64,000 nucleotides of DNA from Klebsormidium nitens (lineage: Eukaryota; Plantae; Klebsormidiophyceae): positions 62,001-126,000 of the forward strand of contig DF237015.1 of assembly GCA_000708835.1 (NCBI GenBank), given 5' to 3'. The notes below the pieces were generated by a model. It saw only the letters and a list, made by a program, of their open reading frames with translations. It did no database searches and was not told the origin of the DNA. The position numbers and the translations under genes were made by a program. Each line of letters opens with the position of its first letter. Within the stretch, counting starts at the first letter, position 1. This document shows positions 8,180 through 64,000 of the stretch, in pieces.

Positions 8180-10990
8180 TCAGTACCCGCCCTGGATGTA
8201 GTCGTTGAGCCGCTTGACCTCCTCGCGATGCTCGTCGACAACCGCGCGGACAACGTCACCAATGGAGATCATGGCGTGCATCTTGTGGTCATCCACGACG
8301 GGAATGTGACGGATCCGATGCTCTGAAAGCAACGAGATGCAATCGCTTGAGACTGAAGTAAGCACTTTTTTGTCGAACTTCTTGCCAGGTTGACACCAAT
8401 TTGAATAAAACCTCGATTCTGATTGAGGACCAGGCGATGACGAATGCTCCTTGATGGAGTTTGCTACAGATAGGCCGACTTGAAAAGGTTGAGCATTCAA
8501 ATCTGACGTCCTAAGTAAGACGTGTATAGTACGTGGGCAACCGAACTTATGATTAAAGTAGGCCAGTCCTGTTTCGAGTGAGCATCGATACAGCGATAGG
8601 ACCCTGGTTCAACTGGATGATTGTGATCACTCCTAGTTATCACTAAACCTTCGCTGCATTGATTATTCAAAAGGTCCGTCCTACGCACCCCAACATAATG
8701 CCATGTGCCGACCATTATAATCATGTACATATGCAGGGCCAGCCAGGAAACCGTACAACTGATGTGCTTTTCCCCATCCGCATCATCTCAGTCAGCAATA
8801 GAAATAGATGCAGTGTTGCAAAAATTTTTCAGTGAATGTTAAAGAGTCTCTTAGCCAAGCGAGTCCAGAATTGTGGGTAGATTTCCCCTGGATCGGACAA
8901 CTATCTACGACAGTTGGAGAAGATAAAAGGGGAAATCTGGGTTTTGGGCGCACCTGTCATGAGCTGCATTGCCTGGAGCACCTGGGTGTCCGGAGTGACC
9001 GTTACAAGCTTTGCCTGTAGAAAGGAGGAGTCTTTGTGAGAACCCTTTAAATGCGAGTTTGCATTAAATGCGAGTTTGCAAAAGAAAGGCTGAAGAGCGT
9101 CCAGTTGCAAGGAGTGTACCTTTTGTGAAACCACTACTTGCACTTTGGAATGGCGCAAAAGGGTCACTAACCGTGGGCGAAAGACGAGAAGAGAGGCTAG
9201 ACAAGCTGAAAGTTCTGAGCAGCGCGTATCGTTCGCCACATCCAGATTACGGTGTCTTGAGAAATATAGAACGGGAATTGGTGCTTTCATTAAGACTAGA
9301 AATATTGGAGCAAGTGAGGAAACGTCAGCCACAGGCTGCTTTTGAATGTAGGAGCTCAGATATACAGGGAGAGCCCCAACCACTGCTTACTTCCTCAAAT
9401 GCAGTGCTGCTCGACTCTTAAGGGCGTCAGTTCTCAACAAGCATCATTTCTTAAAGAAGCAACTCTCAGTACAGTGCTGAATTGCGGTATGGAACAAGAT
9501 CAAAGAAGAGCAGAAGCTTGAGAACACTTCACAAGTTTCACTCCTGTGATCAGCCCTGGTCTTCTAGAGCAAGCGCTACAAAAGCTTGGGCCAATACTTG
9601 TCATGTCAAAATCAGTGCCATTGTAAGGAAGCAGGTCAAAGTTCACTTCTTGCTCTCATTGCATATAAGTCACTATAATAACGAAGTCACTATTTCTTGA
9701 TCGATCACACTTGGATCAGCACACAATGCAGGCTTCAGAGCTTGAAATGAAAAACCTCACCTCAACCGTCATGATGTCCCCGACCTTCGTCTCTTTGGAG
9801 GTTCTGTTCTCTATGGCAACCTTTCGAAGGTAATCTGTCAGGAATGAAGTGGTGGCTTAAACATCGACAAGCAAGGCTGCGAATCTGACAAGAGCCTCCA
9901 TAATCTCAGGAAAAGCAACAACTAATTCAGCAAATAAAGTTCGCATGATACTTGAGTACAGTGTGTAGTTTGCAAATTGCCGACGGGCGGGCTTTGGGGA
10001 TGAACGTAAATGGTGCCAAGGGAAGGCAGACATCATCCAGAGTGGTTTAGGGTTCTTGTAGATAGTTTGGCGGCCAAGCGAGAATCAACAATCAGAAAAG
10101 ACTCCTTTTTGCATCTTGGCAATCCAGGCTCAGTCTGTGAAAGGACTCATTCTGTGCCATCAGCAAAAAGGCTTCCAAACCACACCAAGACAGTCTTCCT
10201 GTCGTTTTGTAAGAGGAGCGCGCACCTCTTTCAGTGATGATCCCAGCAATCCCGTCCTTGCCCGACTTCATGACCACCAGCGCACCGACATTGTGCTGAG
10301 TCATCTGCATTTGATAGACAAATTTTGCTCAATCGCCAACATGGCTGCTTTTGTGCGCAAGGGATCATACAAAACAATTGAAAGGGCGACTGCTATCCAG
10401 TACAAGCAGTTCTCCTTGCATAAATCTTTGTCTTTCAGAAGCAGCTGTCCAAGAACCACGACTCCCAATTTCAGCGGCAGAGCAGATTGGAAATATTTTG
10501 GTTTGAAATTCCACAAAACAATGACTGGAATTTAGCAATCCTATCAAAGATTATGTGCGCTTGTTTGGAGAAAAGTCCTCTACAAAAAGAACACTGTTGT
10601 TACAGAAATGAATGAACAGAGCTATTAATCAACTTACACGCTTTGCGAAGAAGATGATTCTAATGCAAAAAACAAAAAATGACAAACTTCCATGCAGTCC
10701 AATGCACGAACCTGCCTCACAGCATCGTAGACGGTGTCATCAGTCTGGCACCAGAGGAAGGAGCCCCGCTCCTTTTCCCCCTTCTTGTTCCTCAGAATGT
10801 CTGCAATCGTTGACCTTTCCAGGTGCGCATCATGCTCGTCTGTGTCCTCAGCCTCTGCTGCCGCACTCTTTGCGTTCCCCCTCACTTGCAACCTGCTCAT
10901 GCAAGACACCTGGCCAGCCCGAAGGGTCTGCAGGAGCGAACCCCTCAGGTCCAAGGCCCCCCGCTGCAACACCTTAGAGACGCTCTGCAT
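8180..10990 (-). CDS. CBSX3: CBS-domain-only protein, CBSX3-like, probable mitochondrial presequence (211 aa)
   Basis: Exons 10990-10712, 10304-10226, 9834-9761, 9014-8954, 8322-8180 join in frame. Motifs TDDTVYDAVRQMTQHNVGALVV, GIITERDYLRKV, TKVGDIMT, HRIRHIPVVD, ISIGDVVRAVVDEHREEVKRLNDYIQGGY*. Confidence 0.93.
9047..9080. repeat. Perfect 17-bp tandem duplication in a CBS-gene intron
   Basis: TTAAATGCGAGTTTGCA x2, 30-65 nt upstream (minus-strand sense) of the acceptor at 9015. Confidence 0.9.
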
Positions 10991-18482: not shown

Positions 18483-19207
18483 GGGCCATGGGGGCAAATG
18501 GGAGAGGATCGAGGTTTGCAGGTTGATGGGACCGGCCAAGCTTGATTCAAAGGGAACGATTGTCGAGACGTACCAACTTATTATATAAGTCATAAATCAA
18601 GTGCGACACTGTGTAGACGCACCGACGCGTCCTTTGCTTGTTCAGAATCTTTCTGATGTTTGATATGGCGGTCTCTTTGTATTACTCAATCAGGAAGGCC
18701 GTGGAATCTCATTCATCTCAGTGAGCACCAACCATTCTGAGTCCATGCTCAAGTATTAACACACGCAGTAGATTCAGTAGCATGATAGAACGTACACACA
18801 GAATTCTGCCAGATGTCGATCAGGAGGTCTCTGCTGCCCGTGGCCGCACGCCCCAGCTAATATGCAAGTAAACATGTCGACTACGGGACTCTCTGTCATG
18901 AGCTAATTCGATCCGCATGCCATCATGCATGTGATGCCGCTAGGCTGCCGACCCACTATCATGTGAGATATAGTGGGCGTCCCAAGACCACATGCAAATA
19001 AGCGGCCGCCTAAATCAAGGTTAAATAAGCAAGGATATATGGTGCACACAATTTTGTTACCCGCACGCGATCAAAGATATCGCTTCCTGATCGTATATGG
19101 GCCCGCCGCTGATCATCACTCTCGGCCATACACAGTGCAATGCATGACGACGGCCAGAGTATACCGGTCGCGTACGCATAGTGCCCCCCAGTCCAGAGGG
19201 CCTTCCT

Positions 19208-22200
19208 TCACATGAAGATCTCTGTAAGGGGTTTCGTCTTCAATTGGCAGCCTAAAGGACACTTGTAAGTGGGCCGCCTGCCTTTCGAAACCTCCCGAGC
19301 ACGATTGCTGGCTAGGTAATCGTTTGCACAACTAAGGCAAGCCTTGGCGTGACCACAACCGAAAGAAGCTCTCCGTGTCGTCTCGCTCCATTGCTCGAAG
19401 CATATGTCACATCCGCTAGGCTCGTGGACCTGCAGAGGGTCACAAGAAAGATTGCTCGAGTGAGCGCATTGAGCGTATTGGGATCGCATGCCAGTTTCAA
19501 GCGCCCGTGACATCCAAAAATATCAGAAAAGAACAATCTTCTAGGCCGCTTTGGATGTGAAAATACCCCTTACGAAAAGATAATAGCTTCGAATGTCTGG
19601 CTTGAATTTCTGATGCAGCATTCCTTTGATAGTCTTACGACAAATGTTGCAGATTAGAGATGGTGAAAGTCTGGGGACTTGCGACCAGTGGACGAAAAGG
19701 GAACTTGAAGATTTCAAAAACCTCAGGCATGGTAGATGGAGAACGGCATCTTGTAACCAGCAGCAAACGTTCAGAATTTATGGAAAGCTCCTGTGTCCTC
19801 ATTGGCGTGACGCCATACAACAGAAGGTGGCCACCAGAAGCGGTTATCTCAGCTACGTACCTTGACAATCTCGTCTTCTCTTTTTTGGCCAACGCAAGCT
19901 GGGTCTCCAGGGCCCGCACCTCTTCCTTCAAGGCGGCCATGTCTTTCGTTTTTTCTTCGAGTATGACTTTGTATGCTTCCAACTTCCTGCATGCAGAAAG
20001 ACGAAGAACGTGACGAGGGTGCTTTTGCAAACTAAAAGGTTCATGTGCTTTTCGTTAAGGCAAGTTTCTAAAGGCGTTTAATCTATCCTTCACCCCTCCT
20101 CGAACCCTACAGTCCAGTGATGCTAGGCGTGTTTATGACTGCGTTTTCCTCTCGCTTGCGGCTATGCTCACATAGTTCTTTGGAAACATGCAGCGTCCCA
20201 GGTTTTGCGCGAATCGCCCGTGGCAGCAAACATGAAATATCGCAAAGATCTTACGAGCGCAACACATAGAGTTGAAGACATAAATGAAAGCATTGTGCAC
20301 TTACGTAGTCAAGTCCTTATTGAGGGAGTGCTGATCATCCTGGTACTTTAGGAATCTCGCCTCCTTTTGTTGCAGCCTCCTCAAAAGATTCTCCGTCTCA
20401 GCATTGTCTGTCGTCTTCGACTCTTTTACCGCCCTATTCCAAGTCTCCGCTAGTTCTTCAGAGTGTAGCGCCTTCAAGCACCTGAGTTGCTCGAGAAACT
20501 GCATGATTACATGTGAAAATCAGGAAATCCAAGCTTATTGTATGACTACTACAAGGAGGAATAACCTACTTCGCTGGAAGAACCCTTGAGTTAGAGAAGG
20601 GTTAGGCTGGGGCTCGATGGCAACGGCAGATTGGCTGCTATGATGAAGTATTACATTATGTTAGGCTTCGACTTGTGTCTGACTGAGAACAGTTTATCGT
20701 GGGAGCCAGAACCACGTACTCTGCGTCAAGCGGTCACGGCGTTCGGATAACGCCTCTCACCTCGTCCTTCTCGGACGCTCCTTGCATTTCCTGGAGGCGC
20801 CGCTCTTGTTCTTCAATCTGCTCGACAGCCGTTGCTTTGCGGTTCACTTCCTTCTGGCTTGTTCCGGCGGTCACCACTTCAGGAAGAAGATGCTTCGAGG
20901 CTTTCCTTGTAGTTGCGGCTTCCGACTCGCCGCATCTTCGTTCCGCCTCTTTGACGCTTATAGCTACCCACCTCCGTGAACGTTTGCGACCGCGCGGAAA
21001 CCTGCAAAAGTGAACATCACTTGTGCAAGATCCTATCAAAGCAAGGGGTGTGCGCTTTGGAATGTGCTCGTCGGCTCCATCTATCATCATTTCAGCTTAA
21101 GGTCACGCAGACCTTACAACCTTGTGGTCTCTTTCTACAGAAAACTGCACCCGTTTGGCTGGCCGTTCACAAACTTATCCTGCAACAAAATCACAGCGGT
21201 GATCGAGGTTGATTCTTGCCTTTCACCAAAACCAGAGAAAGGCGCTTTGAAGCTAGAGGCGAACCACTTTCAGTCAATCAGTCATTTCCTTCTCCTGTTC
21301 TCTAAGGAATGCGCTTGCAAAAGTGATTCTCAGGACCTCGATTCCGGATCTTGTGATGAGAAAAGCAGTCCAAAGCACATCCTCGAACAGTTTGGTGCTG
21401 AAAACAAACAGGGGAGGTGCCGTCAACAACAAGGAACTTTTACTGTCGGTAGAGACCCCGGTCTCGGAGGTCGTTTTCCCTAGTAGCAAGATAACAGAAC
21501 AGCCGCCGACTTCCATTCTCCTCGACAAGGCCTTGCACGTGCTGCAGCCACGCGCTGAGCTCTTTCTCTACGTTCCGAGAACTGATTGGGAGTCCGCTCT
21601 TAATCAAAACCCGTCCCCATTCTCTTCGGCCTTGTCCCATTGCTTTGAAGTGAGCGTCCATTCCTTTGGCAGCGCTGATGCCTTCGCGGTTTCCTTTGAT
21701 GACGAGGACGGCAGCGCCTGGAGAAGCAGAATAAGCGGTTCCCTTGGTTTCGAAACTTGGGACAAGGATCACGTCATAGTTGACAAGCAATGACAATGCG
21801 GAGTGATTGTGAACCCCCTTCAAACGTTGCTGTTTGTGCATATCATCAAGGGATCTAACAGAATCAAAGAAGACAAGAATCTTCCAGAGCACGGGTATCC
21901 AGAGAAGACTTCACTACCTCAAACAACTCTCTAAGCTGGTCCTGTATCAAACGAAAGATTCATATGTTCTCAGAGAAGCGAACACGTCCAATGATGGTGA
22001 ACCAGCACCAAAAGTTTATTGGTCATGACCCGAAATGCGTCCTGAAACTTTGAAAATAATCTTGAAGACCCTTGGTAGGCTGCAAACGCTGTCACCCAAC
22101 TCTACGCTTATCCATCTTCTTGTATCATTTTTCGAGTTCACGGACCAAGAAGTCCTCCACCTTGCAATCGTTTGAGAGCCACGAGCCATCAGTAGAAAAA

Positions 22201-23500
22201 ATGAGAAGCTCACCCATGTGGCCGTCTTTTCGTGGATTGCTATACACGTTCTGGAAGTGCCATCGGTAGCCAAGTGTCTTCTGGAGGCTTTCTTCAGCGA
22301 CCCCGGTCCACTTTCCATCGAGAACTCCAGTGCGCAGATTATGGACAACGACAGTAGGCGGCCAGATCACGGAATCAAACGGAGACCCAGGCCCACTGTC
22401 ATCTTCCGGTGCCTGAGCGTTCACAGACGGAGGTGCTCCCTGCTTCGAATAGACCCCGGGCCTAACAGAGCTTGCTCCTGCCCCTTCTTCTGCCTCCCGA
22501 TTATCGGAAAGCTGAACCTTGATCTCCTGCTGCCCTGTCTCTGACGATGCTTTCAACCTTTTTGCTCGCGGCTCCGCTAATACACTATCTCGCCTCCCTT
22601 TTTGAAACAGCTGCTTAGGGCTGTGTCCCTGCTCGAAGTCCTGTCCTGGACCATCTTTGCAACGTGACATCGGACGGGAACCGGAAGCACAGAAACTCAT
22701 TTCGCGCTTGCTTCGAGCTCCCTCGACGCTGTCGCTAGTCCCACCCTTCCTAGTCGTTTCTCCTTTCATTGCTGGAAGCTCATTTGTACATCAGTTCTTT
22801 TAGCTTTTCTTCTATTTGAGCTTTCTCTGCAGACTGCACCTAATCCGGAGTGCTTTGTGAAGGACACAAGTCACTGCGGTGTATTTCCCTTCCAGATCCG
22901 TCGGGCGAAGCGAATCCGGTCCTATCGTCGCCATCAACAGAAAAAGCTCCACTGTCTGACCCCCCAGCACCGCAGACCAGGTTGCATTTGCACGGTCCGC
23001 CTTTCTCAGAACGAACCATAGGCCGAGCTCTGAAGGGGGGGATCACTGGCAGGGAACGTTGATTGGACGAAACTGCACCCGTGGATGTCAGAACGCTCGA
23101 ACTCCCTGTCATGCCCGAATATGGAGACACCCTAGTCGAAGAATTGAAGCTTTGGGTGGGATGTGAATTCATCGCAGGGGTTGACTGCGGATGCAAGCAA
23201 AGAGTGGCAGGAGCGCAACCGAGAGAAACCAAATTTGGCGAGGCCCAGTTTGTCGTGGTCTGACTGCTCCATGGTGCCCAGGATATAGAGCTGGGCCGAG
23301 GAAGGGGCACAACTAAAAGGCCCTGTTGCGAGGGGTGCAGAAGGCGAGTATGCTGGAGTTTGTGCATGGGGGAAAGTCACAGCAGCTGTCTGGGACCTCC
23401 ATTGCGGACCAGCAGGCAGATAGGGGTTCTGTTGCTGCCAGAGCGAAGGTGGCCCGCCGGTCATACCTAACGGCTCTGCGTAGCCGCTGCTTGGCTGCAT
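19208..23500 (-). CDS. XS-domain (SGS3/IDN2-like) + coiled coil + C-terminal RING finger protein; spliced model, two junctions uncertain
   Basis: XS domain across exons 22771-22214 and 21717-21444: VIWPPTVVVHNLRTG...GKWTG...DGHMG|AAVLVIKGNREGISAAKGMDAHFKAMGQGRREW...RRLFCYLAT. In-frame downstream exons 21179-21151, 21001-20761, 20498-20305, 19986-19861 are coiled-coil-like. Last exon 19429-19208 reads CDIC..GCGH..CLSC..CPLGC..EIFM*. Possible 5' exons 23500-23467 and 23312 to about 22877. Linking exons 21397-21337 (needs a 46-nt intron) and 19670-19574 were inferred from frame only. Confidence 0.65.
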
Positions 23501-25131
23501 GCTGGAGCGAAGTATGTACTAGGACAAGAAATAAAGTTCGCCTGGTCACTTATAAGTGACTGCGTCTCCCAGAATTGAAAGACCAGTGTGACGTAGTACG
23601 CTGTGGCAATCTGCGGTGCCAAAGCTCATGTTTTGATCCTGTCAATCGAAACGCGGAAAAGTCAGCTGTTTCGAGGCAAATCTCGAGCGCTTAGCGGAGA
23701 GGATTAAAACAGGGTGCGCAAAGCGAATCGAATAAGGGAGGAGCTCCCGCAAAAATTTGCGAAAGGCACACCAATCTTGCGAAGAGAGAGGCTGCCCAAG
23801 GAGCAAGACGAAAGCATTGTCGAGGTCTTCTCTTTGCATGCTGATGTCAAGACAAGCCGGACTGGATCGAACTTTTTGTTGGTGGGGCGTACAACAATTG
23901 TTGACCTTCTAATGTTGACGAAACTGGCTACTACCTACTGGCTGGCGTAAGCTGTCGCGGTCACGTGCGCGCAGGTTTCCCTGAAGCGGCCGCGCCGGCG
24001 CGGGGCGATCGTCGACAGTGACTGTGTAGCGCGCTCGGGCCGGTCCCCAGTCGTCCGCTCCAGGAAGCCATTATTGACGGATCACTCAAGCTTTTGTTAG
24101 GCGCAGATGTTATAGAAGCGCTGATGTCGCTTCTAAACGAAAAGAAGACTCCGTTTTGTGGAGCACAACACTGGCAGTCCAGTAAAGACGGCTTGCGACC
24201 TTAATCTCAAGTGGTAAGACTGACGCTCCGCTACATTTCATGATTCTTGGCAAAGGAATGCCAACTATTGTATAGATGCGAAAAGGGTTTGGAGGAGTCT
24301 CCTCCTTAAAAAGTTGGCATAAGCTGCACGCACTGTCTCATCAGGGAATATTGCAAAGTGCATGATCGAGGCATCAGCCATCTTCTTAAATCAGGAAGGG
24401 TCTAATGCGGCTTACTTGGTGCTTCTTTGAATAGGTAGACCGTTGAACAAAACCATTCAATTCGATACTTGAGCCTTTTTCTCAGTCGTAAACATTGGTC
24501 AACCATAGGCCTTGGCTATGTACAAATAGTAAGCCTAAGAGCCTGGTCCATAACGCCATCCTAAACGACTCCGACACCGGCTTTCGATCGAACGATGAAG
24601 ATGCCAACAGCAGTTACTTTCTCCAGACAGAAAGATTAGCCTGCTTCCGAAAACTTGTCAACATGCTGACTGTGCCTTGGTGATGAACTTTCAGCGGTGA
24701 CAACGGATCTGTTCTGATACAAGAAACGTTTCGCGAAAAACACTGACCTATCCTTGCTGTTTTTGTTCAGAGTCGGCTTGTTTGTTGATGAACAAGCCAA
24801 TATATCTCACTCTTGCAGGTGACTTGGTTTCGGCTGAAAATACGTGGCAAATATATTGGAGGCCTCCAAGCTTAGCGGACCTACTCTCAACTCCAGCGGA
24901 CTCAGCTGCATACAATCATCTTGGATCCAAACAGAGGGCCCTCCAGACCGTTGTGCATCAGCTCATTCGTCCGTCATTGGTTCTGAAAGAACAGTAGTGT
25001 GACTCCTTTGAAGCTTCTCAGCACGTCATTGGTTCGAGACTTGCCACAAGGAGCGGAAAGAGGGGCACGGGAAATCCGTTGTCTAATTCTAATGAAGTTT
25101 CTGTCCTGGAGTTGGCTACACGTGTGTTGCC

Positions 25132-26214
25132 TTGGAGCTTCGCACGCAACGATCAGCAGCAATGCAGACAGATCTTGATCGGATTCAAGCGGAGGGTCCC
25201 GCGAAGATCAGCCGTCTTCAAACAGAGCTTGCGGCGCTTCAAAAGTGCCTCGATGCTGCGAACGAAGAGAAGAAAAGGAGAGAGGGGGAGCTTAAGAGCA
25301 AGCGCGCGGCGCTTCGCAACGTTGTTGCACAAAGAGACGGCCTTCGAGCGGGCACTAGCAAGCTTCAAGAAAGGGTCGCCGCCGAGAAGCGGAAGCGGGC
25401 TGACATCAGCAAGGAAGTGTCCCTGCTCCAGAGCGAATTGGAGCGCGCGCGTAAGGCGGTGCGAGACCTAGAGAACGCCACGGCAGCGCGCGCGCGCGAG
25501 AGCGACCGCTTTTACTACGTCCTCGCCTTTAACGGGCAGGTCGGTTCCATTCCGCGCAGCGTCCTGGCATCAGCCCCAGAGTCTGTTCTGTACAAAATGT
25601 ACTGCGGCGCTTGGGACTATGCGCGAGACGAAGACGGTCGCGCAATCGTCACGTGCCACCCGGACCGATGGGCCGCAATTCTGGAGCACCTGGCGACTGG
25701 AGCGGTTCCCTTGCAGCGGGACTCGCAGCTGTTGGAACAGGCGCGGTTCTGGAATCTGCGGAGACTCGTGGCACGCTTGGAAGCACTCACTCCAGGAGTA
25801 ACCGTCAGAAATGACCGGGACGAAATGGGTTTCAAGGCCCGGCTTACGTTTGTTGACGTCACGAGCGAATACGACAAGTATGGCGCAGAGCTAAGTCTCA
25901 CCTATGCGACGCCCGGAAAGCGCTGGTGGAAGGTGAAGGTGGACAAAGATGGCGTCTTCCAGTACCCGTTGTGGACGCCGGATACAAAGCTCCGAAAAGT
26001 AACAGTCAGAAGCAAGTTCGGACTGCTGTTGCACGGTCGAAGGTTGTTCGCTGATTGGGAAACGCAGGAGTTTTCTGAGGGTAAGGTTGAAAAGGGGTGG
26101 GGTCACAGATGGTCTGATTTAGGCTACAGCATCCATCAGCTGGTGAGTGAACCCTTGGCTCGAGCCCATGATAGCCTCGTCATTGAGATACAGACTCGTT
26201 ATTTGGACGAGTAA
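25132..26214 (+). CDS. Intronless coiled-coil + KCTD-type BTB/POZ + probable C-terminal MATH/TRAF-like domain protein (first ATG 25162)
   Basis: Single 360-codon ORF. N-terminal about 120 aa are heptad-rich. BTB: LAFNGQVGSIPRSVLASAPESVLYKMY..DEDGRAIVTCHPDRWAAILEHLATG..LLEQARFWNLRRL. C-terminal beta-rich part has WWKVKV, VTVRSKFGLLL, GWG and DSLVIEI, resembling MATH (inference). Confidence 0.85.
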   Translation: MELRTQRSAAMQTDLDRIQAEGPAKISRLQTELAALQKCLDAANEEKKRREGELKSKRAALRNVVAQRDGLRAGTSKLQERVAAEKRKRADISKEVSLLQSELERARKAVRDLENATAARARESDRFYYVLAFNGQVGSIPRSVLASAPESVLYKMYCGAWDYARDEDGRAIVTCHPDRWAAILEHLATGAVPLQRDSQLLEQARFWNLRRLVARLEALTPGVTVRNDRDEMGFKARLTFVDVTSEYDKYGAELSLTYATPGKRWWKVKVDKDGVFQYPLWTPDTKLRKVTVRSKFGLLLHGRRLFADWETQEFSEGKVEKGWGHRWSDLGYSIHQLVSEPLARAHDSLVIEIQTRYLDE

Positions 26215-27225: not shown

Positions 27226-30200
27226 CTAAGCAGCAGGCGGTCGTATCGTGGGGTCATTTTCAGGCAGCTCTAGTGCTGACTGGAAGCTCCCCGTCCACAC
27301 GTCTCCACAGCGTGACCCACTGGAAGACGAGCTGCAATTACTCAGTTGACTACCCATGCCCAACGGCGATGACTGCAATCCTTGCGCCACTGACCTATCC
27401 CTCTCAACACCTCCTTGTGGACTTAGCTCCGGTTGTTGCAGCCGCTCTGGCGAGGCCGCCGGGCTCAGCTCCTGAGCTTGACCTGGTAACGCCCCCGCCC
27501 ACTCTTCTGGCGCTGCTTCGTCATCCAATGGACGGGCGGCTTCTTCTTCTGACGTGTCCACTCTTGCACGCTTCGCAGCCTGCGTGTCCGCCGTTTCGGG
27601 CTGTTCATGTCCTTCACCCGTTCTCTGCTGCTCTTCAAATCGTGCATCAAATGTTCCTGCCTCGTTCACTGGCTCGGCAAACGACTCCGTCGTTCTACCC
27701 CCGTCCTCAGGCGTCGCTTCTCTAGTTTCCGCTCCGACTTGCCCCTCTTCCGTCGCATCGTTTCCTGCGGGTAAGTGCACTTGAGCGACCTTTGTTGCGC
27801 TTGGTCTCTGCACGTTCGCAGGGCGGGGGGGCTCTGCCTGCGGCTGTTGACCACCCGGGGGCGGTGCAAACATCCCCGGAGCTCCATACGGCGGCGCATA
27901 CCCAAACGGAGCGTAAGCCATCGGATGATGTCCGGCCGGAAACATGGGGTAGGGGTAACCGGGCGGGTTACCAGGCTGACCGTAGCCATAACCGTGGTAC
28001 GGGTAGGGCGCAGGAGGGGCCTGTTGGGCGTTGTCGGGGGGGGGCGTGCCCGCGTTTGGAATGGCCATTTGGGGGGGGTATGAGTAGGGGTGCATTCCCA
28101 TCATGCCTGGGAACGCGCCCATGTAGGGCATGGGAGCGAATCCGGGGGGGTAAGGATGGGGCTGCTGGAGGGGGGGCGCCGGCGCAACCGGCTTTTCCGC
28201 CTCTTGGCGAGCGGGTTCCGACCTCACACTACTACTGACCTGCGCTGTACTCTTCTCAGCCGTCGGTGCAACCATCGACGGCCCTGGGGCTGCCACGTGT
28301 CTCCCTTTGGCGACCCTGGAATCTAGCGAATCCTGCCGGGCCGTTTCTGGCTGCCTGCTCGCGGGCTGGGCGCCATGTTCTCTCCCGATCCTAGTTGGTC
28401 CGGGCTGAGAAGGAGCCGCTACCGATGGCGCAGGCAGCACCCTAGGGTTCTGCTGAGGAGGGGGTTGCCGGGGCGCACTTGGTTGCGTGCGCGGAACTTT
28501 CCGCTGCTGCTGCGGAGCTACCGGTCGGCTCGGAGGGGGCCCCAGCTGCCTTGCTTGTGTTGGGGGGGGGTTCCCCGGCGGCTTTGGCTGCAAGTTTCGG
28601 AGACCCGTTGGATTTCTTTGGGCTGGGGGGGGTAGGATGGGAGGCCGGAAGTGGGCTGCCTGGGGTCGGGTCGGGTGGTGCATCGAGCCCCCCCGTTGCG
28701 AAATTTTCTCCTGATTGGACCCTTCTGCTGCCGGCGCAGGTGCCTGCCTGGAACCCAGGGTTACCCCGACACCCCCGCCTTGCTGGCCCGCTCCGCCGCC
28801 GGAAAACGCGTCCCTGACACCGGCTTCGCCCAGCCTCTCTCGCCCTTCGTTACTTGGCTGCATCAGTCGCGGGACCCCCCCGCCGCTCTGTCCCCCCTCG
28901 ACAACCGCACTCCCTTGCACCCCCCCGTGTGGCGGGTTCGCCTCCGGCAGGGCGCTGTTGCTAGAGGGGTCCACATGTGGCGGCGCCTGTGCATCCTGTT
29001 GCGGGGGGGCAGCCGCAGAGCCGTCCAAGGGGGGGGCTTGCGCGTTGTTTGTGAGCGCAGCCATCATGAGACTCGGGTTGAAGTTGATCCAGGACAACAT
29101 GCTCTGGAGGCGCCGCTCGAGCGCCTCCTTCTCGGCCTTGACCTGCATCCGCTCCTCGCGCAACTCATTCTTCTCGGCCGTCAACTGGAAGGGAAAGAAC
29201 GAGCGCGCTTTTAGAACCCTTACAATCCTGCATTCGGGTTTTCACATTGGGTTCTCTATGACCAGACAATGTTATACTACATTTGACCTGCAGCCGCTCC
29301 TCGCGCTCTTCGTTCTTCTGCACGGTTGAAAGAAACGGGAGCGGTTTTAGGGTCTTTATGTTCTTATAGTCCCAGAGGTTGGAGTTTGAAGTTTGCTTCA
29401 TACAGTGGAAGGTCGACGCTGAGCGTTTGGGCTTTCACTTGGAGCCACTCCATGCGCAATTTGCTCTTTTCCGAAGTCAGCTGGGGAAAAGGAACGACGG
29501 CGCCTGCCAAAACAATCATGGTCCTAGAATTTGATGTTCAACGGGTTAACCAAGAAGTAAATGTATGTTGAAACGTTGGACCTTTGACTTGAAGCAATTC
29601 CTTGCCCGGCTCCTGCTTCTGGCCATCAACTAGTAAAAATTCATGGATCAACTAATGAAGTTTGACACCAAGAAATAAACTCTGTCGTTCAAAAGTGGGA
29701 CAAAAAGGATTCGTGGCTGGTACATGATCGAACGAAGAGGCACTAAGGAGCAAAGCACAGATCACGTGATTGGGCAAGTTTCTCGGATGAATGTACCACT
29801 TGTGCCAACCTTCAGCCCCAGAGTTTTCCAACTAGTATGAACACGAAAGGCCTCTGGAAGACACCTTAATTAACCCGACCACTTTGGACGACTCTAGCGC
29901 GGGGCTGGCGGTGCATTCACATAATTTATCGAAAGCCACGGCGGCAAAGCTCGCGATACTGAACAGATGGGACACTTTGCTATACGAGGAGCCGTGCAAG
30001 CTACACGAGATCTCGATTGCGAGGTTAAAAAAGTGGGGCGAGCAAGCGTAAGACCCTGCTCATTATCAGGCTCCTGCTTTCCGTTGCGTGCGCGCACCTC
30101 CAGCCCCTATTAGCGGATTGCAGCGTTCAACTGGTACAATCTGGTCGCAATGCGTATGTTTCTAGTGCTCACCTCTTTCGACTCGTCCATCAGGAGAGCG

Positions 30201-55074: not shown

Positions 55075-56628
55075 AAGATCTACAAGATTTTCGGCGCGAG
55101 AATGAAGGCGGGGGTAGGTACTGACCGGAGCGTCCTCTTCGATGATGGGAGCCTTGCAAATCCAATACCCGGAAATCTGACACCAAGTTTATGGTTATCT
55201 GGGCCTGGGCCTGGCTACCGGAATTAGGTACCTAGGTAGGTACGGTAGTATTGAGTCTACGCATTGCGGGTGGACTACGGTACGTCAAACCACGCCCGGG
55301 CAGAGAGTACTGCTTCGGAAAAACCTTTATTACTTTCTTGTATATTCAGAGACTAATTCGATTGTCCCTATACATCTGACCCCCTGCGCTGCCTATCATA
55401 AGGGCTTGATAGGCTTTGGAGTCTGAGCTGGCAGTGACGAATTTCATAATCGGTGCAATTCGTGAGATCTTTTGGTGCTACACGAGGCAGGATGTGTCTA
55501 GGTCTGGTCATCAAGATTCAAACCCTGGGGCCTGGTGGCAGTGGCAGAGCCAGTACAGCTCAATAAGGACCTTGCTGGGGGCTGCTATGCATAACGCATA
55601 ACTTATAAGGGGTTGGTCTCACTCCGTTCGTGCCCGGGGGTAATAAGGGGACATGTCCCTGGGAGGCCTGCATACTCATATCCAGGTTAGCCGGTGAAGG
55701 TGGCCGGTTTCATCCGCAGTTATCAGAGGTGTTCCGGTGCCCGAACGTTTAGACGTCCAGGCGTTTCACGGGCTGCAACTCAGCTTCTTTACCGTACAGA
55801 GGCTATCTAGCTGGAAGAGAAGCCTCAAGTTAACCGTCGGCCTGATTGGAAGGATTTGACGGATTTTGATCGTGTGCGCTGCTTTGATTGGCTCGGTTCA
55901 CGTGCCCCGGTCCGCAATCGTCGATCGGAGCACGCGTACGGCTGCATGTCGGTGCTTGGCGAGAAGCGATCCCCTTGCGCGCCCTTCGACCCCTTCCCAA
56001 CCAATTCTCTGCCGACAAACATGGGAAACCAATCATGAACCCTGAATGACATTTATCGAGCCACTCTTAGCTTGCCACGTGGAAATCATGTCAGGTATGA
56101 GCCGTGGATTTGTGTTCGTACTAGGTCGGGCGTATCTTTTTCAAAATTTCAAAATTTGCTCGCGAGTCGCAGTCGCAGCTCTTGAGTTGTCTTGAGTCTT
56201 GACTCAAGACATCAGTCTGCAGCTGACGGGCCAAAAAGAACCGGAACGCCGGAAGGGGGGTGAACGCAGCAGCAACGCTGGGCGAACGGGGGGACAGCAA
56301 AGAAACGCTTGGCGCTCACAATCGAGGCTACGGTACCCGCTCCTGCTCTCTCCTCAGAAGAGCATTGAACTTGAAGAAGTCTACCTACCCAGAAGAGCAT
56401 TGAAGAAGTCAATCAAACTTGCAATCTGACGGATTTCTTGCTCTGTTCAAGAAGGATCTCAGGACAGCCGCCGCCAGCATGGTAAAGTGAAGCTGTTGGA
56501 AATTGCTGGACGGTGAAGGGCGCTAGTCGAAGCTGCTTCGCATGTCTGTTAGAGGCAGACACACTCAGACGTCCAACAATGCGCATTTGGTGCATTGAAA
56601 GATATCAAAGTTGCAGTTCAGCTTTATC

Positions 56629-59600
56629 ATGGAGGACGCATTTAAGCTCTTACAGAATGCTAACAGCATAGACGAGTTGAAGGAGGTTCTTAGCAGCCTT
56701 GAAGAGCTCTTTGCACAGTGTGCAAAATCTTCAACTGTAGGACCCTCCAATAGGCGCAACCCTGGAGCGACAGCCAAAACCCTAGGTCCTTCAATTGCTC
56801 AGTTGCTAAAAATCTGCTTTGGGAAGCTGAACACTGCATCGACCAGCAGTCAAGCGGAGACTGAGAAAGCCTCTTTGTACGCATCTGCTGCCATACTCAG
56901 CATTGACGCTCTCAGCACCTTGCACGGTCTCAGGCCGCTAGAGGTCGAAATCCAGCGGTACAATCTGATTCGAAGGCTAGTGTCATGGCAGAAGCACAGA
57001 GCAGCCCTCCTTCAGGGTTGGATTCTATTTGCAAGCCTTAGATGCCAGGTTGCGGGGTTGCACGCCAGAAGTGATGAGGAGAAGAAGGAAATGCTGATAA
57101 AAGCAAGGGCCTGGCATGTGAAAAAGGTGGGACTACTAAATCTAAGAGCAGCTGCGAGCGGGGGGCCTGGCAGAGAATCAGTGGAGAGCTTAGTTAAGGT
57201 GAAGGTGGTTGAGCTCCAAAGTCCAGGTCAGGAAGAAGCAGCCGAGATGGTGACGCTTGTGGTTGGGAGCATCCTGAACCTGCTCATCTGTTTGTTGGAA
57301 ACAGCGCCTATGAGCATGACAGCTCTTGAAGAGCTGCGGCCAGCCATCGATATTTTGGGTTTGTGGATCAGGTGAGCGAATGCGGCCTTGCCGCAGCATC
57401 AGCAACTCTTTACGAGACTCGTGCTTTCCAGTGACCACTTTACCTCTAGAAACATGGCCATGTGATTTTATGATGTCAAACATCTGAATGCAACTTTGTG
57501 GGGGCTGTTATCCATATTGCTAATCTCGTTCACTGGAATTGCAGCAAGCTGGATGATGCTACGGCGGCAAAGCACCGGGACTCGTTGTTCCGGTGCTTGT
57601 ACAAGGCCGCATGCCAGCTGCTCCAAATGGTGACGTCGCCCATCGGCTTAGCCTGCCACTACTGCAGCTTAGCCCTTCATGCCTGCAGCCAATCTTCCTC
57701 GAACACTCGGTATCTGCAGGTAACTTGACACCTCCCGTAATGCAATTTCTTGAACGCTTCCTGTCTTTCTTGACGTCTTGCTTGGATGTTGGAGCTTACC
57801 ACCTGAGATGCTTGACATGCTCTCTGATGCACCTTGGCATTGTCACAAACCCGAATCTATGCAGGTGGCGCAAAAACTGAGCCGCAGTCTGACAGAGAGG
57901 GACCCAAACAAAGGTCTTGCTTTCTACCAAGATTGCCTCCAGAGCATTTCCGTTGGTACGCAGGTGCGTAACAAAGTTTGCAATCTGCGTCCTCTGTGCA
58001 TTTGCTTACAAACAGGAAACTCTTCCAAATTGACTGAGCAAGCCCTGAAGCACATCATCAAATCGCCAAAGCCAGGACCTTGCAACTGCTGTCCTTTGTG
58101 GTGCCTACCTCCGACGCGTTTCTGAGTGTGCGTGGTCATCCTCACATGGCTCTCTTTTCCTTCAGGGGTCCAGTTCCTCAGACATCCTGGCTCTGGTTGC
58201 AAGTTACACCCAAGCCTGCATTGATCACGCATCTGAAGAAGCCGGGTGTCACATGATGTACAACCTGTCACTTACTCATCAGGTAATGCTCCACCGCTCT
58301 GAATTGTAGATGTGTATCTATTTCCAGAAGCTCAGCTGGAGCTAAGATCACTTCAAAGGACCCCGTTGTGGCTTTCTCATTTCAGCAATAGTACACTCTT
58401 CTGCATGAAGTTTGCACACCCCTAAGCTACCAATTGGAGACAGGGGCTAAGTCCAATTCATGCATCATCTGGCATACCTGACCAGTCTTTCGTCTTGGCA
58501 GATCACTGGTCTCCACATCCTGCCATTGCTCCTTAACTTAGAACCCGACCAGCTGCTGAAGCTGTCAAAAGGGAATCAGAAGCGGTCAGCCAAGCCTTGC
58601 TTGCAGAGCTACCTGTCATCTGTTCAAAAGGCGATGTCTGCAGTCGATAGCACGCTCAATGACCTACTGCAACTGGAGAAGCGCCGGGTAGAGAAGGAAG
58701 CTTTCTCAGAAGCAGAGGCAATCCTGCTCTCACTCGTCCCAGTCCTGGAGCTCCTCCGCAAAGCTGCCTCTAGGCACGTTGAGAACACGTGGCAGGCTTG
58801 GGTTGCGTCTGAAGGTAGCGAAAGGCATGGAAAAGGAAGTGCCGCTGGAGTGGAGGCTGTGCAAGGGGCAGTGGAAGAGGGCCTGCTGCTTTGGGTCACC
58901 AGCCTGGACGTTTTCTGCAGGTATGTGATACGGGTCTAGGCTTCATTTGAGTGGTTGGCACAGACTGTTTTGATGCAGTCTGAGAGTTTGTTGGATCTGC
59001 AGGCCTCTCCTTTCTTATGCTTAACCTGCTATTTCGCAATCCGTCTTCAATCTCACGATACTTAAGCATGCAGACCAGTCCTCTTGTGTTAAGTCTCCTC
59101 CAATCCTGTCTGTGTAAGGTAGACTACGCGGGGCAATGATAGGGCAAGTTTTGGGTACAATCAATATTGATGATGCATGCCTAACGTCCTGCAGTCTGCG
59201 GAAGAAGAGCAAGTTGAGCGGCGATGCATTCACCAAGCTGTTGACCTCGTTGCCGTCCGTTCTGTCAACCCGGATGCGACTGTGCCTGGCGAAGGACGAA
59301 GAAAAGGTTAGCAACTCCCAACCCTTTCATCCCAGTCTTCTCCCCAGTCGTCTCTTGGGCTTCGATCGTTGGAGGCTGCTTCGAGTCTCCCTGACGTCGC
59401 TTTGGTGACTGCTGAGAGACGCTGGTTGATTACTCCCAGCATTGATGAAAATCCTGCTTCAACAAGAACTGGTTGTTCGTTGCCAGGTCCTGACCGAGTT
59501 GCAGCTGGCGAGTAAATGGACGCAGAAGCTGAGCGAGCTTGGCGTGGGTAGAGAGCTCAAGGGGCTGTCCTCAGGCATGTACAACCTGGGTGTGCAGCTC

Positions 59601-62600
59601 TTCAACCAGCACCGATACGACCTGGTGAGCCATGGCTACTTTGCTTCCAACATCGCCTTCTTGCAGGCTCTGGCTCGAAACTGTGCTCTTAAACAGAGCC
59701 TTAGACCTACGTCCTTCGCCATACAGTCTGCTTCGCGTAACCTTCTGAAGCAGGTCTGCTCTGTGTGACCCTGCATTGACTTGACACTCAAGAGGAGTGT
59801 TTTCGCAGCGCCTAGGTCATTTATTGCTATTCTCGTCTATGGCAGGCCAAGCATCCCCTCAGCGTCGCGAGCCTCGCTTCCTGGGAACGATTTGACACAG
59901 CGGCTGCTCCGGTTCGCCCTTCCGACCAGTCGCTGTCGTATCCCTCCACGATCTTGGAGCAGCACTCCCCCTCTGACGTCATCCAAGACGCCTGCTCGAA
60001 AACAGCCAGCCACGCGGACTGCATCCGCCGAGAAGGGGACGCCGAGGCCGCCGCGGATGCGCTAGTGCCTGGCTTTAGGGGACTGTGTCGCATTGCCGGC
60101 GCGCTGCCAGGAGCGGCCCTGCAGATTCTTGTCAAGCAGCTCGATAAGGTGAGCAGTGACACAAACACCTCCGCAATCGAGTTTTCAAATCGGCGCTAGG
60201 TTCCGGCGATATCCGCTTCGATTAGAGCTGTGACTTGATTGATATCGCTTCTGCTGGCTGGTGCGTCTTGAGGTGGTTGGTCCGGGCTACCAGAAGCAGG
60301 ATCACAGCTCGTCCCCATCTTGAATTGAGATCTTTTGCTTGATTCCAGAGTGGGCAGACTAGCTATGAGGTGCTTTTCAGGTGACGAATGTGCTCATTTT
60401 GCGGTCCCTGATTGAAGCCCCTATTTCTTCGCCGCAGATTCAAGCGCTGGACCCGTCCTTCTTCGTCCACAACCACGTCTACCAGAAAATCCTCGAGGAA
60501 GACCGGCAGCTCGCCTCAAGCAGCCATTGTGGGCTCATCTTTGAAGAAGTAGGCCACCCGCACTTCGTCCGCTTCGCGTCGAGCTCATATTCGACTTTAT
60601 CAAACGCCGTTACTCCGGAAGGGTTTTCGCTCCTCGTCTCTCAGCGTTATGGAAGCCATGCTGCTAGACGCTGATCTTACTAGAAACTTGCCGGATTGAC
60701 CGTCTCTGTACAAACGTGCGGTCAGTGGCTTTGGAATACCAGAGTCTCTCACGCATAAGTAATCAGTGAATGTCTTCTGTGAATATTTCAGATACTGGCT
60801 GGCCTCCAGAGCGAGGAGACAGCAACCTTTGCTCCCGCGGTCTCGTCCCTGCTCAACCTCATGCTGACAAGCATCTACGCTGAGAGCAGTCACCCGATCC
60901 GGAGAGCCCGCCTGCTTATGGAGCACGCTCGGTTGACAGCTGCGGACGACGAAGCGACCTGCACCAGGAACCTCAAAGATGCCATCAAGCTCCAGGCAAG
61001 CCGAATATGGACGTTTGCGGAAATCACCTATTCGCTGGCAAGTTTATTTTGGTTCTGACGGGCGGACTTCATGAGGATTGCTTGCGCAAACGCTTTCATT
61101 CGTTGCAACTCTACCCTTCCAAGAAGTGCTGGCTAATCTCGACTGCCGATTTGGATCCGCGGGTCTTCGATCTCGGGTCACTTCTTGACACAGCACGCAG
61201 AAGTTAGAAACGAGCGAAGACGTCAATTTCTGAAAGGCCTGGCGATCGACAGCAGGTGAATTGAGAAGGTTGTCCTTTTCTGCTGCAGCAAGCCGTGCTC
61301 AGTGACTCCCGGAAGGCGGGCAAGGACGGTGGCTTGCTTGCCTCCCTGCGCGACGAGTGTGCTCTGGCGCGGTGCCGACTGCTGCTGCTCAAACACACGG
61401 ACGCCCCCCAGGTCAGACACAAAAGTGATCCCCTCACGAAACTGCTTCTTATCGATCGTTCCATTCAGCCAGCATCCGCGCCCAGTATTGAAGTAGTGCA
61501 CAGGTTGGTCTACTTTCGCGCAGGCTTTCAAAGCAGGTTCTTGCTATTGAGGAGTCACTCGGCGCACTCTCTTTTAAGCTGCTGTTTAGCGACGTTATGC
61601 CCGGGTCCTGCATCTCGCCAAGAGCACTGCTTTTGTTACACGTGCAAAAGCTGCAAAACCAGAGAGTCCTTCTTCTTCAATTCAGGATCTTCAGCCGGCG
61701 GTCCGGGACGCCTTCCAACTGTGGACGTCACTCCTGGAAAGGAAGGATGTTACCGAGGGATGCTTTCTCAGCCCAACGGCCTCTCAATCCTGTCTTCTTC
61801 AAGTGGCGGACCTCCTTGCAGTGAAAGTGAGCCGATGCTGTATCCCTTTCTGCTTTCCCTGTCAGCCTGGCGTCAACATTTTCCTGCGAAACACCGACAG
61901 CTGTTTCTGTATACTTTGTTCATCTGACTGTGTATACAGCCAGCAGACCGGCAACAACTGGCAGAGAAGCCTATCTCCAGCGTGTTAAAATAATCAAACA
62001 AACTCTCGTTTCTTCTCAAGCGTTGTGCGTTGCCGAGGTCGACGGTTTCATGAACTTCCCGCGCCGCTAAAAGGGTGCAAAGCAGTGGAACATCTCTCTC
62101 GTTCGAAAGACCCGCGGCGACCTACTTGTCTGCTCTTGCAGGGCCTTTCATCGTTGCAACAACAGGCCATTCAGCTCGTTACCCGCATCGCCCATGCAGT
62201 CAGCCCCAGCACGCCTCTCCCGCACCACTGCGCCTCGCTGCTCGCGCACTCCCGGCTCTCGCACCTCCTCTGCTGCAACCCCCTCCCCTCGCCAGCAAGC
62301 CTCTCTGACGAGGGGGACCGGGGAAAAACGCACTCATTCTGGGAAAAGTCCGCTGCTCTCTGCCCCGGGTCCCTTCTAGAAGCCACGGTGAAGTCACGCG
62401 CAGGCTGCGCCTGTACGGAGTCCCCGAGCACCAGCGAGAGAGATGACGTCAGCGCTTCCGCAGAGCAGGAGCTCCGTGCGGCGATAGCCCAGAGCGCTTC
62501 CGCCGGAAGGAGGTCCGCGACGGAGCTGGTGAAGCAGAGCGGACTGCTGCAAGCGCTGGCGGAGCGGCTCTTGCGCGAGGGGCGACGAGACGAAGCGCTG

Positions 62601-64000
62601 TGCGAGGCGACGGAGGCCTTACGGATCCGCTTCGGGCTGTTCGGACACACGTTCGGGGCGGGGAGAGAAACAGAGGGGGACAGTCACGCAGAGGGCGAGG
62701 AGAAGCAAGATAGCGGACGGAGCGTGACTTTGACGCCGACTGTCGCGGCGGCTCGGGTGGGCTGGCCCTCGCTGTTCTCTCGCAAGGAAACGAGCGGAAA
62801 GATCAGCGGACTTCACAACTCGTGGAGGGTCGTCGGGGATTACCTGGAGAGTCTTTTCTTCGTCGGGACGCTCTCCGAGAGCGCGGGAATGGTCGACGAT
62901 GCGGAGCAGAATTTTCGGGAGGGGCGGCGGATCGCGGAGGCGGCAGGCGCCGCGCACGTTTGCGCGGCCTTTCTGTCGAGCATGGGGGAGGTGAAGCGGA
63001 AGAAGGGGAAGTGGGACGCGGCAAGCGAGGCGTTCGAGCGGGCCGGGGAGTTCCTCCGGGAGGCCCCGATTGACTGCGAGGGCTGCCGGGTGCTGGCGCT
63101 GGCTCGGCTGGAGAGACGAAAGGGGGATCTGGTGAGAAGGCGCCCGGGGAGCGCGTCAGAAGCGGGGAAAGAGCAGTCGGGGGCTCGGGAGCACTACGAG
63201 AGGGCTGCGAAGATGCTGCATGGCGTCGTTGGGAGCGAACCGGGGAGCGGTCGCAGGGAAAAGCAGCATCTGGTTGAGCGGGCGGGGCTAAGTAAGGGTT
63301 TAGGAGCGACGGCTGAGCTGGAGGAAGGTTCGATGGAAGGGGTGAAACGGAACCTGATGTGGGCGATGTCCGAAGCGGAGCCCAGCAAAGAGCTCGTCGT
63401 TCCGGTCAAACGGAAACCCGGCAGGAAGGCGCCGGCGAACCCGGAACGGACACCGCTCGCGGAGGCCCCCACGAACCACAAGACAGGACGGCCGGGCCGC
63501 AAAAAGGCGGCAGTAGAGGTAGTGACGATTCTTTCGTCCGACGAGGAAGCGAGCTGCGTCACGCGACTCGAGACCGCGAACCCGGCAGGGAAACGGAAAG
63601 GCCCTGTTCGAGGTCGCGCGAGCAAGATTGCGCAGGAGAGCAGCGCGTCGGAGCTCGAGAGCGAGGCCTCGTCGACCAGCGTGGCGAACAGCAGGGCCCC
63701 AGTCACTCGGAAACAGCCCCGGGGAAGGAAGCCGCGAAACGCGGCAACCGGTTCTGACGCTGCGTCGGAGTCGAGCCCACCCGCCAAAAGGGTTCCTGCT
63801 CTTCCGGACCTCGACAAGAGGCAGGAAAAGCTGCGGAGAGTCGTGCTGCTGGAGAAGGATTCCGTGCTGCCCGCTCTCCGGGGGTCCAGGCTGGGGAAGA
63901 TTCCGGTGGGCGCAGCGGAACTGGACGAGCTGCAGGCGGGAGTAGGGCGCATTGCGCTGAATGATGCCGGCGGCGAACGGATGGAGCGGGGCTCAGATGC
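56629..64000 (+). CDS. ESP1: Separase N-terminal and middle region; 3'-partial, protease domain lies beyond the window
   Basis: In-frame exons 56629-57371, 57545-57719, 57865-57963, 58166-58282, 58502-58920, 59195-59306, 59487-59624, 59846-60148, 60438-60548, 60792-60995 (GC donor), 61289-61411, 61686-61826, and 62142 to the window end (open frame, absent from the track). Plant-separase-like motifs as I recall them: RPLEVEIQRYNLIRRLVSW, YAESSHPIRRARLL, VADLLAVKG, SRLSHLLCCNP, SWRVVGDYLESLFFVG, IDCEGCR..LERRKGDL. Confidence 0.88.

Follow-up and report, generated by a model that had tools for sequence, protein, structure and literature searches.

The 64-kb window analyzed here (a 64,000-nt stretch of Klebsormidium nitens contig DF237015.1, whose own positions are used throughout) carries on its minus strand, between 23500 and 19208, what reads as a single gene that in a recent ancestor encoded an XS domain, a coiled coil, and a RING finger together. 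From its exons, the ancestral protein would have comprised, in order, a disordered N-terminus, the XS domain, a basic patch resembling a nuclear localization signal (NLS), a helical coiled coil of ~150 residues, and a C3HC4 RING at the C-terminus. We favor, with modest confidence, a reading in which this was once an XS–coiled-coil–RING gene whose copy in the assembly has lost one nucleotide at the end of exon 5, such that the RING is uncoupled from the rest of the protein. Domain and profile searches were run exon by exon, and codons were walked across the exon pieces to count stops. The locus was compared throughout with L001, a related contig, and is laid out as follows.

22843..23500, minus strand: P/Q/S-rich N-terminal region, probably once coding, conserved; begins at ATG 23500, with similarity to L001
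22214..22769, minus strand: exon 1, read from the conserved ATG 22769; a charged linker of low conservation plus the N-terminal half of XS; donor GG|gtgagc, phase 1
21444..21717, minus strand: exon 2, C-terminal half of XS at ~21712-21476; acceptor ctccag|G, donor CA|GTAAAA, phase 2
20761..21001, minus strand: exon 3, basic patch and start of the helical region; acceptor ttttgcag|G, donor GACGAG|gtgaga
20305..20498, minus strand: exon 4, helical/coiled-coil core; donor AC|gtaagt, phase 2
20603..20630, minus strand: 28-nt block in intron 3, identical in L001
19861..19986, minus strand: exon 5, last helical exon, 126 nt; donor AAG|gtacgt
19430..19860, minus strand: intron 5, holding unconserved routes back to the RING frame
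19208..19429, minus strand: terminal RING exon; acceptor ctctgcag|G, C3HC4 RING at 19411-19247, stop TGA 19210-19208

Relatives of this gene were rare. A whole-library HMMER search with exon 2 returned only two, both short open reading frames (ORFs). P0001, to which exon 2 is 81% identical, lies on L001, an 18.9-kb genomic Logan contig. Because L001 is collinear with window positions 29161-19204, including two neighboring genes, we regard it as the orthologous locus from a related species. The alignment of the two shows that all five donors and acceptors are kept in L001. The ratio of non-synonymous to synonymous substitution rates (dN/dS, by Nei-Gojobori, window versus L001) was 0.22 for the XS part of exon 1, 0.33 for exon 2, 0.55 for exon 3, 0.11 for exon 4, 0.34 for exon 5, and 0.10 for the C-terminal 55 codons of the RING exon. 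The XS domain, exon 4, and the RING are thus under purifying selection (dN/dS 0.10–0.33), which argues for an ancestral XS–coiled-coil–RING protein; and since splice sites, phases, and purifying selection are common to the window and the syntenic L001, the parts are best read as one ancestral gene. A word search with exon 4 found only the L001 ORF and a metagenome contig (L003; ENA ERZ23789742, 544 nt) that holds a relative of this exon with 89% amino-acid identity and a GTGAGT donor. This contig has one extra C just before the donor, a base that is possibly an error, as the contig is of low coverage. Exon 1 and the RING ORF gave no match in word searches, nor did the RING exon and exon 4 in a pair of metagenome scans or the window ORFs in exact look-ups, and a cluster look-up gave nothing further.

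A splice from 22214 to 21717 that rebuilds an XS domain had been proposed in an earlier reading made from the letters of this DNA alone (hereafter, the sequence-only reading), and our searches bear this out. The junction (22214|gtgagc ... ctccag|21717) is phase-matched, with G+GC yielding Gly, and the Pfam XS model (PF03468) matches exon 1 over profile positions 3-42 (21.1 bits; ~22373-22254) and exon 2 over profile positions 58-109 (19.0 bits). The two half-matches are complementary on the profile, and each, scored alone, lies below the gathering score of 25 bits. Relatives reach this cut-off: the L001 counterpart of exon 2 alone scores 26.0 bits, and the more distant relative P0002 scores 25.1 bits. 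As PDB profile queries, the XS halves found no relative, and half an XS domain searched against the ESM Atlas gave noise only. Pfam searches showed no zf-XS in exon 1, in the upstream ORFs of the window, or in the upstream ORFs of L001, in line with the sequence-only reading, which had seen none; neither was there an XH domain in the exons.

Beyond the XS domain, the frame runs into a TAA at 21442-21440. If transcripts ended there, as the sequence-only reading had considered, the locus would hold two genes: one with XS only, ending at this stop, and a second encoding the coiled coil and RING, starting from the ATG ATG at 21090 that is in frame with exon 3. We consider this arrangement very improbable. 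The TAA overlaps the GT of the phase-2 donor of exon 2 (CA|GTAAAA), and joining this donor to the strong acceptor ttttgcag|G (21001) yields CA+G, a Gln codon, after which the reading frame stays open. A stop of this kind comes with every phase-2 GTAA or GTGA donor, and exon 4 ends in the same manner (AC|GTAAGT). The donor reads CA|GTGAGG in L001 and CA|GTGAGC in the more distant L002, i.e., its consensus is kept across three loci while the overlapping stop codon itself changes from TAA to TGA. On the downstream side, ATG 21090 is not conserved in L001, where the frame of exon 3 meets a stop 22 nt ahead of the acceptor and lacks a start codon in its first 136 nt. Exon 3 retains both of its splice sites in L001, differs from it by indels of 9+9 nt, and shows protein conservation that starts exactly at its acceptor; a mere 350 nt would separate the two genes. 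Given the conserved splice sites, the upstream stop in L001, and the lack of a conserved start codon, exon 3 reads as an internal exon and a two-gene model as unlikely. The TAA at 21440 is thus best taken as a by-product of the phase-2 GTAA donor rather than the end of a gene; with this, with every splice site kept in L001, and with no conserved start in exon 3, XS and coiled coil belong to one gene. As a general warning, stop codons that lie in frame but overlap a phase-2 GTAA/GTGA donor do not mark gene ends. Extra exons between 21440 and 21001 were also considered and rejected, as this region is without conservation.

The coiled coil that follows the XS domain is present, as judged by composition, weak Pfam matches, and a structural model of exon 4. 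It is carried by three conserved helical exons (21001-20761, 20498-20305, and 19986-19861), all rich in charged residues and Leu, and weak matches to coiled-coil families were seen in Pfam. The first opens with an NLS-like basic patch (FPRGRKRSRRW, ~20997-20968). The second, exon 4, is 87% identical in amino acids to L001 and is modeled as two long helices by AlphaFold from the single sequence, with a predicted local distance difference test score (pLDDT) of 78.5. The sequence-only reading had listed four phase-matched coiled-coil exons. We count three conserved ones, and the last junction is out of phase when the conserved sites are used. Its fourth exon was probably a 97-nt candidate at 19670-19574, which is phase-compatible and flanked by possible sites (cccag|..|gtaagg) but is not coiled-coil-like, and whose acceptor AG is absent in L001.

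The terminal exon ends in EIFM* and encodes a RING-type pattern, C-x2-C-x14-C-x-H-x3-C-x2-C-x22-C-x3-C, at 19411-19247. Its eight zinc ligands stand in C3HC4 order, with C-x3-C instead of C-x2-C as the last pair. The C3HC4 pattern is unique in the six frames of the window and occurred in 0 of 100 shuffles. Against Pfam, the exon matched seven RING-clan models at 15-24 bits (best E 4.5e-5) without reaching the gathering cut-off of any, and with these results the terminal RING exon described in the sequence-only reading stands. Its best sequence matches in the PDB were Roquin-1, TRIM32, and MEX3C, at non-significant E values of 0.3-1, and a single-sequence fold was unusable (pLDDT 45). Over the C-terminal 55 codons, there are 25 synonymous and 18 non-synonymous differences from L001, and all Cys and His residues as well as the TGA stop are kept there. 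The first 36 nt of the exon (19388-19423) show only 2 differences from L001, while the remainder of the exon has a proportion of synonymous differences (pS) of 0.66; this suggests extra constraint on the 36 nt, e.g., from a splicing enhancer or a second reading frame.

It is at the junction between exon 5 and the RING exon that the assembled gene comes apart. Both splice sites are conserved: the donor at the end of exon 5 (19861) is AAG|GTACGT in the window and AAA|GTATGT in L001, and the acceptor is ctctgcag|G (19429). Exon 5, however, measures 126 nt in the window versus 127 nt in L001, the missing base lying within 19886-19876 (A6 run / GAG-AAG), and as a result its donor is in phase 2 here and in phase 0 in L001. 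Using the conserved sites, the window therefore enters the RING exon out of frame (tail ..STSLADVTYASS..) and stops at TAG 19314-19312. Three substitutions that follow the exon 5 indel are conservative or synonymous in the L001 frame only (L/I, A/V, K=K), pointing to the deletion in the window as the derived state. The RING exon itself is 222 nt in the window and 220 nt in L001, where an independent 4-nt insertion, lying past the first Cys pair and ahead of the C-x-H motif, splits it into two frames; with the conserved sites, the common TGA is out of frame in both species. The claim of an XS domain fused to a RING accordingly divides in two: conserved splice sites, phases, and selection support one ancestral gene, but in the copy at hand these sites leave the RING out of frame. 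The assembled gene has thus most likely lost the link between its RING and the other parts, and the predicted main product is an XS–coiled-coil protein of ~502 residues that has no RING and closes with 38 residues of nonsense sequence. The locus may instead be a young pseudogene.

Several observations weigh against an uncoupled RING. Its dN/dS of 0.10 is very low, pointing to a RING that was needed until recently; the missing base adjoins the A6 run, so that an assembly error is possible; and the direction of the indel was called from one orthologue and three substitutions. Moreover, the window offers three phase-compatible rescues, which are the only routes that restore the RING frame: an acceptor ctcgag|19454, a donor GTAGCT after 19857, and inclusion of the 19670-19574 exon. 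The low dN/dS, the adjoining A6 run, and the rescues, together with the presence of all eight ligands, speak for the gene as the sequence-only reading had it, an intact XS–coiled-coil–RING E3 ubiquitin ligase of ~538-545 residues whose frame is restored by a weak site, by the candidate exon, or by an A that the assembly has missed. Both alternative splice models (the donor after 19857 and the acceptor at 19454) are indeed open up to the conserved TGA, and the candidate exon is phase-compatible at both of its sites. These rescue sites are, however, weak and unconserved. The GTAGCT donor lacks the G at +5 that is present in 11 of the 12 donors at these loci, and neither it nor the GAG acceptor resembles the 12 donors and 10 acceptors of the locus and its relatives; the candidate exon has no acceptor AG in L001; and all would have to compete with a strong, conserved donor and acceptor. 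An assembly error also sits poorly with neighboring genes that are free of indel noise and with three further lesions upstream at the same locus. We thus hold an intact fusion to be possible yet rather unlikely, and we note as a second warning that a path that is "phase-matched" via weak splice sites is no evidence for a fusion.

The other end of the gene is disrupted as well. Similarity to L001 starts sharply ~10 nt before ATG 23500, at 72-82% identity. L001 covers the N-terminal region with a single P/Q/S-rich ORF of 205 amino acids, for which the window needs two frames (+1 near 23296); the window then has a TAG at 22842-22840 where L001 reads CAG, and a further +1 near 22785, while L001 has a -1 in its upstream region near its position 6196. 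As every upstream junction survives intact in one species or the other, exon 1 was probably ~245 codons longer in the past, and the upstream region, which has no Pfam match, appears to be a conserved N-terminal extension that is broken in both species. A phase-matched donor/acceptor pair, 23467|23466 (G|GT) to 22772|22771 (AG|CA), is present in both species as well; it would join the first 11 codons after ATG 23500 to the codon before ATG 22769 and bypass the broken region, and it may have arisen by chance.

In total, six frame-breaking differences separate the window from L001, and all fall in the terminal regions (971 nt), leaving none in the XS–coiled-coil core (1373 nt). Were the six placed uniformly, the core would be spared with a probability of only ~0.005. 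The two neighboring genes, with ~3 kb of coding sequence, likewise show no frame-breaking difference from L001. The pattern speaks against general assembly noise and in favor of eroding ends or a young pseudogene. One reading of this pattern is that both species still make the selected XS–coiled-coil core from the internal ATG, having shed the disordered N-terminal region and the RING independently, and that the core protein would act as an SGS3-like adaptor or as a RING-less partner of RING-bearing paralogues. The clustering of all six breaks in the ends (p ~0.005) speaks for this reading. The ends are, however, of low complexity and more prone to indels, it is not parsimonious for two lineages to lose both ends in parallel, and the RING dN/dS of 0.10 would require its loss to be very recent. 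We consider this reading unlikely. If two related algae had each cut away the RING and the disordered N-terminus on their own while selection kept the XS–coiled-coil core, one would be seeing an RNA-guided E3 midway in its change to an SGS3-like adaptor without a RING, or to a dominant-negative partner for paralogues that still have one; taken as a claim in its own right, this is decidedly unlikely.

Returning to the reading that we favor, in which an XS–coiled-coil–RING gene has its RING uncoupled in the assembled copy, the ancestral protein may have worked as follows. Its XS domain would bind RNA, as do those of SGS3 and IDN2, its coiled coil would dimerize, and its RING would recruit an E2, whereupon proteins on the bound RNA would be ubiquitinated. 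Exon structure, domain matches, conservation, and frame breaks were observed directly; we infer the RNA binding, the dimerization, the E3 activity, and which product is made, and ubiquitination guided by double-stranded RNA is, for this gene product, pure conjecture. To our knowledge, XS–coiled-coil–RING proteins have been studied by nobody. In them, a silencing-type domain that recognizes RNA would be tied to ubiquitination.

The idea of an RNA-binding RING ligase is not new, and Roquin-1, MEX3C, and the TRIM family share with the ancestral protein the combination of an RNA-binding module and a RING. They bind RNA through unrelated domains (ROQ, KH, and others), however, and there is no detectable homology beyond a generic RING. 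Closer in architecture are SGS3 (zf-XS, XS, coiled coil) and IDN2/FDM (zf-XS, XS, coiled coil, XH), where a long helical coiled coil follows directly upon XS as it does here; SGS3 also resembles this gene in its disordered N-terminus. The window gene differs from both in lacking zf-XS and XH, in its terminal RING exon, and in the weakness of its XS match (~20 bits per half). The sequence-only reading had supposed that the combination of XS and RING was possibly undescribed, but a protein of Selaginella moellendorffii, XP_002979112, had already been noted as an XS protein that lacks zf-XS and has a C-terminal RING instead (PMC5907777, 2018). Compared by description, it has the same order as the ancestral form of this gene, i.e., no zf-XS, then XS, then a C-terminal RING; the window copy, in contrast, is very divergent, with two relatives in the whole-library search, and has its RING out of frame as assembled. 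A paper on the plant RING repertoire (PMC6118397) does not mention XS. An XS domain without zf-XS and with a C-terminal RING in one polypeptide fits the ancestor that we reconstruct, and the window copy does not fit it under the conserved splice sites. On these grounds, the gene is best described as a new, very divergent member of an already noted XS–coiled-coil–RING architecture. The locus shows such a gene kept under purifying selection in the Klebsormidium lineage, and, since its RING is uncoupled in the assembly, it is ill suited to stand for the family in experiments.

A few further features of the window deserve mention. The 28-nt block in intron 3 (20603-20630, minus strand) is identical to L001 positions 8750-8777, while the surrounding intron is ~60-65% alike; it is present as a single copy in the window, and an Rfam search over 18800-23800, which includes the block, gave no match. 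Upstream of the gene, the ORFs at 27229-29184 (minus strand) and 25132-26211 (plus strand) are long, conserved, and collinear in L001, without a clear Pfam family, and the second has weak coiled-coil and Rx_N-like matches. Base composition changes at one end of the window, where G+C is 0.65 over 62001-64000 versus ~0.51 in the rest. Last, an ORF at 56611-57372 (plus strand) matches the Pfam model TPR_ESP1 (separase-like TPR repeats) at 39.6 bits.

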